Source: Zancudomyces culisetae HAW-14-8
Taxonomy: Eukaryota > Fungi > Kickxellomycota
DNA length: 64,000 nucleotides
Direction: 5' to 3'
Assembly: GCA_052426225.1 (NCBI GenBank)
Contig: JBNJNM010000015.1
Location: 620,001-684,000 of the forward strand
Both the position numbers and the translations under genes were made by a program. Position 1 is the stretch's first letter; every line of letters starts with the position of its first letter. Below are positions 8,653-11,798 of the stretch, one piece after another. The notes below the pieces were generated by a model. That model searched no databases. It was not told the origin of the DNA and saw only the letters and a list, made by a program, of their open reading frames with translations.

Positions 8653-9235
8653 CCTATACCTTGAATAAATTAAACTGGCTTGATTTGTTAATTGTTCACT
8701 TTTTTTTTATTTCTTTTGTCGTATCTACTGAGTTTTGCACTACTACAAAATTGATTATTGTTTCTGTCCCTTTCTTTTCTTCTCTTGTATTTTCTTGTAT
8801 TTTCTTGTACTTTCTTGTATATTCTTTTCTTTTCTTTTCTTGTATATTCTTTTTCAGTTTATTTCTGTTTCTTTTACCTGGTATGGTCAATAGTATTTCC
8901 AAAATCTAGGTTTTAAAATAAACTTTGTATTAAAGCAAAAAGTTGTTCCTTTATTTTATTTGTCTTTATTTTTTACCTTTTTACCTTTTTACCTTTTTTG
9001 GTCAAACTTGTTACTTTTTGGTTTGTTTTTTTAGATTATTTTTCCAAACTCTACACACACATTACTATTTTCCAACTTGATATTATTGTTGATTTGCTTT
9101 TGCTTTTGCGTTTGCTTTTGTTTGTGCTGTATTCATATAACATTTATTTACATTAAAAAAATTTTTTTTATTTTTTATTTTTTATTTTTTATTTTTGTTC
9201 TAGACTTTGGGTTTTTATTTTTTTATCCCTTCCTT

Positions 9236-9275
9236 CCACTCCCCGCCCACTCCCCGCCCACTCCCCCCCCAACCC
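9236..9275 (-). repeat. C-rich tandem repeat (CCACTCCCCGC x2-3), G4-capable, in the divergent MTR10/Rsm1 promoter region
   Basis: ccactccccgcccactccccgcccactccccccccaaccc read directly. Confidence 0.5.
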
Positions 9276-9989
9276 ATTTACTCCACTTCATTCCACTTTC
9301 CTACTCTCAAGCTTACAAACCACGCGTTCTGCGATTTATAAACTAATTTGTTTTTGATGATCCTTTCTCTTTTCCTCCCTGCTCCTCCCTGCTCCTCCTA
9401 CCCACTCTCGCTCTGACTTCTTCCTTGGTAGATAACAATTTTCCCGCACAAACCTCCTTTTATCTCTTTTCCTTTCTTTCTCACTCACTCTCCTATTTAT
9501 ATTTCCATTTAAATGTGTGACTGGATAAAACTACAAGTAATAATAAAAGTACGAATACTTCTTGTATTGCCCGATCAGCCTCAATATATATTCCTATTTC
9601 ACCCTCCCATCCTCTCATTCACCCCCACCTCATCCTTCTCATCAAATACTCTAATATCCAAACACCGAATTATTAGCCTTACTATTTCCCTATTTCACTC
9701 TAATTTATTACTCGCTAAATTCAATATTCCGATATTTGGCGTTTTTTTTTAACTTTCCTCTTACCACTTTTGCTCAGTCTCTTCAATTCTCACAATCTAC
9801 TTGATATATTCCTTGAAAATTAAAACAAATACGTAAATAAACAGAAATACAATATCACTAAAAAAATAAAAAAAACCAAAAAAAAAAAACTACAACTACA
9901 ACTACAAATACGAAAGGCCATAGAAGTTTCAAAGGGATAATAACATTAATAATAATAACAACGAAATACAACCTCAGTACTAAAAGCAA

Positions 9990-11798
9990 ATGAATAACGA
10001 TCCAACACTGACAGATCCTTCAACAACTACTGGCCATTCCCTTTTGTTGAATGAGAACGAAAGCATCTTTAACTTTAAAACGATTCCCCTCTCTACCACA
10101 TTTTCATCCAGGCTCAACAAACGAAAAGCAAAATCCATTTCCGACAACGAGGTTACTGATTCAACACAGAATAAATCCCATACGAACAAGAGTAATAAAT
10201 TTACAGAAAATCTTGCTCCAAATCACTCTTTTGCCGAGAACCTTACCAGGTAAAGTTCATACATACACTCTCACCTTACCCACCTACATCACCCCCTCGT
10301 TTTTCTTGTCTTTGTATACGTTTTTTTATTTTATTCTCATTTTTTTTACTTTAATGGAACCCCCCCCCTTCCTCCGATATTATTCCTTTAGACCAATATT
10401 TGCTCAGCTTTGTAGAACCCAGAGTATTGACGACTTGTTATTCAGAATCTCCACTTTTAAGATAAGTTAATTCTAACTTTCCCTTTTTTTCATTATTATT
10501 CTTTTTATCCAACATGATATTACTTTTACCTTTTACTAATTTCTGTTTTAACCTTTTACTTTTCTCAATACCATATTGAAAATTAAACAAAAAAAACAAA
10601 AAAAAAACCAACACAATATTTCTTGGAGTATAAAACATGAAGCTCTCAACCCAATAAACTGTTCTCTACATGGTTGGATAAACTCTGGTATGAATCGGCT
10701 CGAATGTTTATCTTGTGCATCCATCCTGCTGATTGATCCAAGTTCAGTTGATACCGATTACCACTATGATGTTTCTTTGGACTCTCCAATCGATGATTTT
10801 GCTGATGAACTCTATAACAAAAGTAAATATTTTATCTTTTATTTTTCACTTCTCACTCATTTACTTGTTTTGTATCAATCCTCGTTATGTATTCGCTTTG
10901 CAATTACTTGAAATAGACGAATTCATGGTGAAAATATTTACTGACCAGCTATCCTCTGCTCATAAACCTGATTGTTTGTGGCATAGTACTTGTTGCAAAC
11001 CCGAGTTGTATGGCCCAGTATCTGAGACCGCCAGGACCCAGCTGGTTAAACTCAACAACACTGTAAAGTCGATGCTTTTGTTGCCATCCAAGACACCACT
11101 CGCATCTTTATCTACACCACCTTCTGTTTCCGAATCACCGGAAAATCCATCATTTTTACCGCACATCTCCCTGCCAAAGGTAATTTCTCCTCTTTATCCT
11201 TCCTCCACCATCTATTAATTCGTACTTTTTGTCTATTTTTTTTCCTCACCTATATCCCCGTTTATTCGATATTTAGGATCTCGTTGAAAAGTATGGCACC
11301 AAAATCGACTCGATTGTATCAAAAATCACACCAATGCTGGATGATCCCCTTCCCACTGATACTTTTAAGCGGCCTAGGATTCAACCATCCACATCATCGC
11401 CTTCTTTGCCTAATTCTTCTCCGGTCTATACAGCCTGCGTACTTGCTCTTTTCGGTTGGATACCTCAGGAAATTTCAAATCTCCAATACCTGAAATGTAA
11501 TTTATGCTTTCGGTCTATTCCACTGACCTGTTATAGTAAATTAAACAAACAAAAAACAAAACCACATGGTAGTACTTCAGATGGTTGCACAGAGCACAAG
11601 GATCGCAATGCTGTTGATAATGAAGGTGGCTCTGTCGACCATCTAAAGTCTTTTGATGTCATTGGAAATCATCGGATTTATTGCTTCTACGCAGACAAGT
11701 CTACGGATACGACTGAATCAAATCCGTTTTCGTCCGAGAACCAATTTTCCTACTATAACAGTAGGGTATTTCAAACTCTGGATAGGTTAAGCATTTGA
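9990..11798 (+). CDS. C3HC zinc-finger / Rsm1 (NIPA/ZC3HC1, Pml39-like) nuclear basket mRNA surveillance protein; exons 9990-10249, 10392-10461, 10615-10822, 10917-11179, 11277-11798
   Basis: Spliced motifs LLFRISTFK|NISWSIK..LNPINCSLHGW, LECLSC, HKPDCLW, ACVLALFGW, LKCNLCFR, FDVIGNHRIYCFY; three GT-AG introns and one AT-AC intron (10462-10614). Confidence 0.85.

Follow-up and report, generated by a model that had tools for sequence, protein, structure and literature searches.

Can a protein-coding gene depend on an intron with AT at its start and AC at its end and, if so, which spliceosome would remove it? This question is raised by a zf-C3HC/NuBaID gene located in a 64,000-nucleotide (nt) stretch of the genome of the gut fungus Zancudomyces culisetae HAW-14-8 (contig JBNJNM010000015.1, positions 620,001 to 684,000); the whole stretch is referred to here as the window, and all positions are those of the window unless another contig is named. 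Judged by the domains predicted in its exons, the gene belongs to the Rsm1/Pml39/ZC3HC1 family and encodes a protein of the nuclear-pore basket, and its second intron, 10462-10614, is quite probably a U2-type (type II) AT-AC spliceosomal intron. An original prediction, made from the DNA letters, had placed the segment in this class. Its sequence, homology, a second assembly, the match to U1 and the failure to detect minor small nuclear RNAs (snRNAs) all argue for that placement, and splicing itself is the part of it that we infer.

The family assignment was examined with Pfam searches made exon by exon, in which each exon served as a separate query. Exon 3 alone matched zf-C3HC (PF07967) with 31.5 bits over profile positions 18-61 (cut-off 22.2), exon 4 matched positions 73-123 of the same profile with 21 bits, and exon 5 matched NuBaID_C (PF08600) with 37.3 bits (E = 3e-9; cut-off 20.2). 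Yeast Pml39 (7RDN) is the sole solved relative (E = 0.008). With zf-C3HC in exons 3 and 4, NuBaID_C in exon 5 and Pml39 as the solved relative, the Rsm1/NIPA-like identity proposed earlier for the gene was upheld.

Direct reading of the DNA gives AAG|ATAAGT at 10459-10467 and CAACAC|AAT at 10609-10617. The features on which the original prediction had been built were found again at the same bases: exon 2 ends with TTT AAG (10461) and is followed by ATAAGT, exon 3 starts with AAT ATT TCT TGG at 10615 after CAACAC, and the 153 nt between them have AT...AC ends and, at 10468-70, a TAA in frame. The segment 10467-10626 is free of AG, the flanking AGs being at 10465-66 and 10627-28, and an intron from GT 10466 to AG 10628 would be 163 nt long and out of phase. 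The absence of AG is in itself unremarkable, given that the intron has only four G residues and that 7% of mononucleotide shuffles are equally AG-free. The donor at 10462 is significant in comparison with chance: the window has ATAAGT at a frequency of 2.8e-4 per position, and AAGATAAGT a single time in 128,000 positions, exactly at the boundary required by homology. A one-base shift of the intron (10463-10615, TA...CA) would give the same messenger RNA (mRNA).

That boundary was derived from an alignment (MAFFT) in which the peptides of exons 2 and 3 were entered with homologues as separate rows. The end of exon 2, LLFRISTFK, fell on the F-L-x-R-L-x-S-F-K of the homologues, and the start of exon 3, NISW, fell on their x3-W, leaving neither a gap nor a surplus column after the end of exon 2. 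The two exons abut exactly in the family alignment (F-K | N-I-S-W), and the F-x4-W-x2-K spacing that had been said to follow from removal of the AT-AC segment is indeed obtained. A family hidden Markov model (HMM) was also built from ten homologues, with the window sequence excluded. Exon 3 scored 51.3 bits with this model, its match starting at HMM position 21 with the Ser at 10621 (Ser-Trp being positions 21-22); exon 4 scored 18 bits, and exon 2 matched positions 3-20, with its Lys at 18 and with frame, order and coordinates all as expected. Since the exon 2 Lys is at position 18 and the exon 3 Ser at position 21, exactly Asn and Ile fill positions 19-20. The Trp of W-x2-K is nearly invariant across the 13 aligned sequences, and the opening 10 residues of exon 3 are worth 7 Pfam bits (31.5 bits, compared with 24.6 when they were removed).

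All boundary pairs around exons 2 and 3 were enumerated for frame and stops. The in-frame, stop-free GT-AG pairs are, in full, 10412-10642, 10424-10642, 10437-10628 and 10466-10642 (177 nt for the last); a single GC-AG pair (10407-10628) has the same properties, and the skipping of exon 2 from GT 10250 to AG 10628 is likewise in frame. Every one of these options deletes the conserved Trp or W-x2-K. The earlier statement that an upstream in-phase GT deletes the motif holds; the in-phase pair 10466-10642 and exon 2 skipping had been overlooked, and neither of them rescues a canonical reading. Apparently, the conserved protein can be made through the AT-AC junction alone.

For comparison, contig LSSK01001762.1 of an independent Illumina draft assembly (GCA_001969505.1), which is near-identical to the window, was used. 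The AT and AC termini of the intron are the same in this contig, and by this agreement an assembly error at the termini was ruled out. The intron is 154 nt long in the draft contig, with differences at 10476, 10479 and 10597 and one extra A, a length which shows that no reading-frame constraint acts inside the segment. Exons 2 and 3 and the covered portion of exon 4 are identical in both assemblies, and the open reading frame of exon 1 is intact in the draft contig despite 7 substitutions. The differences between the assemblies represent either two strains or two haplotypes. A paralogue or haplotig was ruled out, the gene being single-copy in the 27.1-Mb, 25-contig genome. Upstream of the gene, the HiFi and Illumina contigs, compared over 9000-10600, differ by many substitutions and several indels (e.g., 9188-9212, 9252-9263 and 9373-9382). 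The 3' end of the intron (10580-10614) is an A-rich tract in place of a pyrimidine tract, and it is polymorphic, with a substitution and an additional A in the draft contig; introns 3 and 4 are likewise A/T-rich at their 3' ends (AAATAG and ATTTAG).

With regard to the spliceosome involved, /ATAAGT is a very strong consensus among metazoan U2-type AT-AC introns (PMC5029451; PMC1557818), and the donor AAG|ATAAGT fits the U2-type consensus at all positions save +1. When AAG|AUAAGU is set against the 5' end of U1 encoded in the genome, ACUUACCU, seven of the eight positions from -2 to +6 are paired and the only mismatch is at +1; the AT-AC donor would pair with U1 better than any of the gene's three GT donors. 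Signals of the other class were sought as well. The donor, ATAAGTTA, departs from the rigid U12 donor, ATATCCTT, at +4 to +6 and there is no ATATCC; neither TCCTTAAC nor CCTTAAC occurs in intron 2, and no TCCTTAAC-like motif lies within 60 nt of its 3' end, the closest TTTTAAC being 63 nt away. RNA structure joining the splice sites was not significant (z = -0.44).

The 27-Mb genome contains one detected U1 gene (G000:C11:3222884-3223039) whose 5' end, UUACUUACCUGG, is canonical, as well as one U2 gene (G000:C13:443817-444019) that carries a canonical GUAGUA branch-binding sequence. A variant U1 carrying a compensating base was ruled out, the sole U1 detected being canonical. In a search for minor snRNAs of the kind suggested in the original prediction, none of U11, U12, U4atac and U6atac gave an Rfam-model match at E <= 0.001 among the approximately 45 prefiltered candidates scored per family, whereas U1 and U2 were recovered by the same method. 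The top U12 match at a relaxed threshold (16.6 bits, E = 7.6) is noise. PDCD7 was not found in the genome, nor was a U12 5' motif.

In the mechanism proposed here, the major (U1/U2/U4/U5/U6) spliceosome would remove 10462-10614 and join ...TTT AAG to AAT ATT TCT TGG..., the near-perfect U1 pairing of the donor compensating for the A at +1. The second catalytic step would need a mutual fit of the first and last bases of the intron, in which A at +1 would be tolerated only with a last C, and it is this requirement that would make AC rather than AG act as the 3' splice site. In yeast, A at +1 and C at the last base are a compatible pair for the second step, according to the account of Parker & Siliciano (1993) given in PMC5029451. 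The CAC| at 10612-14 is the first pyrimidine-A-C beyond 10571.

Several points weigh against this reading. The YTRAY motifs of the 3' half of the intron lie 63 and 75 nt from its 3' end, and between them and 10614 there are several other AC sites and an A-rich tail; these sites include TAC| at 10559 and 10571, which would shift the frame, and the choice of CAC|10614 as the 3' site is left unexplained. AAC| at 10608 is in frame too, and its use would add Gln-His. Taken alone, exon 2 scores poorly against the family HMM (1.1 bits, E about 0.3). The spliced protein of this gene is absent from the protein collections searched, and no Smittium-like orthologue from other Harpellales was found in a representative search with exon 3, in word-index searches with exon 5, exon 3 and the separate-row alignment, or in two metagenome scans. 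The negatives for the minor snRNAs come from only some 45 prefiltered candidates per family. Lastly, the use of the junction 10461|10615 in mRNA, and likewise the branch point used and the efficiency of splicing, are what we infer from the genomic sequence.

Were the gene spliced at canonical sites only, whether from GT 10466 to AG 10642, from another upstream GT or by exon 2 skipping (10250-10628), the fit of the AT-AC segment would be coincidental and the protein would be without W-x2-K. Such pairs are in frame and stop-free and would be favoured by annotation pipelines, and canonical isoforms could coexist with the AT-AC product. However, they lose residues whose spacing agrees exactly with that of the family, including the near-invariant Trp of the 13 sequences, and with them 7 Pfam bits. 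Moreover, GTTAAT makes a poor donor and GAG| and AAG| make poor acceptors, the first AG reached from GT 10466 (10628) is out of frame, and AAGATAAGT, which occurs once in the window, sits precisely at the boundary required by homology. Splicing of this kind alone is regarded as unlikely. Rather less likely again is a decaying or non-functional gene in which GT and AG were lost by mutation and the intron is retained. A retained intron would end translation at 10468-70, and many conserved fungal genes are missing from this genome, whose BUSCO completeness is 71.9% (PMC12611240). Decay does not fit easily, however, with a single-copy gene whose five exons are open and whose Pfam matches are in order, or with exons 2-4 that are identical in two assemblies whose introns and exon 1 differ. 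In addition, the two terminal changes together make up a known splicing-restoring pair (A at +1 and last C), as far as it is described in PMC5029451, which would be a rare outcome of random decay.

It is very improbable that a minor (U12-type) spliceosome, overlooked in the searches, removes the intron. U12-type introns typically have AT-AC ends, only a subset of candidates was scored in the snRNA searches, and some Zoopagomycota, Basidiobolus among them, are rich in minor introns (PMC10639083). Against this, the donor ATAAGTTA is not ATATCCTT, no TCCTTAAC-like motif is present in the last 60 nt, and the four minor snRNA families, PDCD7 and the U12 5' motif were all negative in a genome where U1 and U2 were found by the same method.

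The Zancudomyces intron is best read as a fungal addition to the very rare class of U2-type AT-AC introns. To our knowledge, fungal members of this class have so far been only proposed or encountered as a minor side product. In five model genomes, Sheth et al. (2006; PMC1557818) counted 24 such introns, with zero in worm or Arabidopsis. The animal examples, such as human SCN4A intron 21 and SCN5A (PMC1557818; PMC2831892), have the same ends and the same /ATAAGT donor and are without U12 motifs; an origin from AT-AC U12-type introns, which then became 'trapped', has also been proposed for them (PMC2831892). The intron described here differs from them in its occurrence in an early-diverging fungus in which the minor spliceosome was undetected, in its length of 153 nt and in its A-rich 3' region, and its splicing is predicted from sequence. 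Within fungi, the nested AT-AC intron of RPL30 in Saccharomyces cerevisiae (Gould et al., 2016; PMC5029451) is alike in that the host is without a minor spliceosome and in the compatibility of the first and last bases. The RPL30 event, however, concerns 1-2% of transcripts, the protein can be made without it, and its donor is unlike ATAAGT (PMC5029451). The engineered yeast introns with A at +1 and C at the last base rely on the same pair of bases (Parker & Siliciano, 1993, to the extent reported in PMC5029451). If the reading is true, the locus would provide a natural test of how strict the fit between the first and last intron bases must be, as well as a test of minor-intron rescue after loss of the minor spliceosome. 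Its suitability for the latter arises from the minor spliceosome being undetected and from the human counterpart having an AT-type U12 intron.

That counterpart belongs to the same family. Human and mouse ZC3HC1 (NIPA) are minor-intron genes with an AT-type U12 donor, TCT|ATATCCTTT (Olthof et al., 2019; PMC6717393 Table S2), and branch sites TTTTTCTTAACA in human and TTTTCCTTAACC in mouse (PMC6717393 Table S2). The mammalian intron shares the AT-type class with the Zancudomyces one, and the listed coordinates, hg38 chr7:130041102-130049032 in human, put it towards the 5' end of the human gene. It differs in its U12 donor, ATATCCTTT, in its TTCTTAAC/TCCTTAAC branch site and in its length of several kb.

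A second candidate AT-AC intron was recognised in the TLG1/syntaxin-6 gene of Zancudomyces (G000:C7:931486-931610; L010:1685-1809). It is 125 nt long and reads G|ATAAGTAT...AATAC|AG, with an ATAAGT donor and an AC end. The pieces of Pfam PF09177 that flank it stop at profile position 64 and resume at 66, which implies that exactly one split codon is needed. The two candidates are alike in the ATAAGT donor, the AC end and the exact Pfam contiguity; the TLG1 candidate differs in having an in-frame GT-AG alternative (L010 1702-1811), which would add six residues, in an AC directly before AG and in a purine-rich strand. Human STX6 has an AT-type U12 donor, as does the mouse gene (PMC6717393 Table S2), and the intron is U12-type in Drosophila too.

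The human counterparts of both AT-AC candidates are therefore AT-type minor-intron genes, which is unlikely to have arisen by chance; the human catalogue holds 722 minor introns in 699 genes (PMC7507305). A rare route by which AT-AC U12-type introns are converted to AT-AC U2-type introns and then remain in a 'trapped' state was proposed by Lin et al. (2010; PMC2831892). The ZC3HC1/STX6 pattern favours such a conversion and makes it plausible; the pattern is circumstantial. At close to but not above an even chance, the ZC3HC1 family once had a U12-type AT-AC intron, which in this lineage turned U2-type when the minor spliceosome was lost and kept its 'trapped' AT-AC ends. More tentatively, Z. 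culisetae, and perhaps Harpellales generally, may have lost the minor spliceosome, with at least two AT-AC U12 introns (those of the ZC3HC1 and STX6 orthologues) surviving by a switch to U1/U2 recognition that left their AT-AC ends in place. It speaks against a U12 history that in nine homologues whose DNA was readable this position is free of introns. One plant-like gene has a GT-AG intron eight codons downstream of it. If the conversion is true, these introns would offer surviving cases of the rare 'trapped' passage from U12 to U2 and would mark the fate of minor introns once their machinery is gone. The splicing-efficiency feedback that the original prediction raised as a possibility is speculative.

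Also against it, a quick look at the orthologues of eight other human AT-type minor-intron genes gave no further relics. No intron was found within the domain of the PHB/Band_7, NHE, ATG9 and TFIIS orthologues, those of ALG3, TRAPPC2, PRIM1 and GPAA1 have solely GT-AG or GC-AG introns (as judged by eye), and an HSBP1 orthologue was not found in the genome. The Sedlin/TRAPPC2 gene near G000:C11 1329735 has an apparent GC-AG intron, ATTAAG|GCAAGT.

The coordinates of the gene and of its five exons and four introns are collected in Table 1. Public gene models probably miss or truncate this gene, and predictors restricted to GT-AG and GC-AG introns will break or truncate it.

Table 1. Predicted structure of the zf-C3HC/NuBaID gene of Zancudomyces culisetae HAW-14-8 (window positions).
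Feature	Positions	Strand	Description
zf-C3HC/NuBaID gene	9990-11798	+	Five exons, from sequence and open reading frame (ORF) list
Exon 1	9990..10249	+	ATG at 9990; low-complexity N-terminus; phase 2 end; donor CAG|GTAAAG at 10250
Intron 1	10250..10391	+	GTAAAG...TTTAG, 142 nt, canonical; one split codon connects the exon 1 and exon 2 frames
Exon 2	10392..10461	+	70 nt, ...DDLLFRISTFK; start of zf-C3HC/NuBaID N-terminal domain
Intron 2	10462..10614	+	ATAAGT...CAACAC, 153 nt; 64 T / 57 A / 28 C / 4 G
Exon 3	10615..10822	+	Codes NISWSIKHEALNPINCSLHGWINSGMNRLECLSC...; first zinc-binding half of zf-C3HC domain
Intron 3	10823..10916	+	GTAAAT...AAATAG, 94 nt, canonical; one split codon connects the exon 3 and exon 4 frames
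Exon 4	10917..11179	+	zf-C3HC domain, second half; Pfam and family HMM
Intron 4	11180..11276	+	GTAATT...ATTTAG, 97 nt, canonical; both sides phase 0
Exon 5	11277..11798	+	NuBaID C-terminal domain, stop codon included; Pfam PF08600, ORF end

The draft contig LSSK01001762.1 stops within exon 4 (window 11061). The public gene call found for exon 3 is only a 44-residue fragment starting from an internal Met (window 10690-10821; P0001; L002:3438-3570, L002 being the draft contig).

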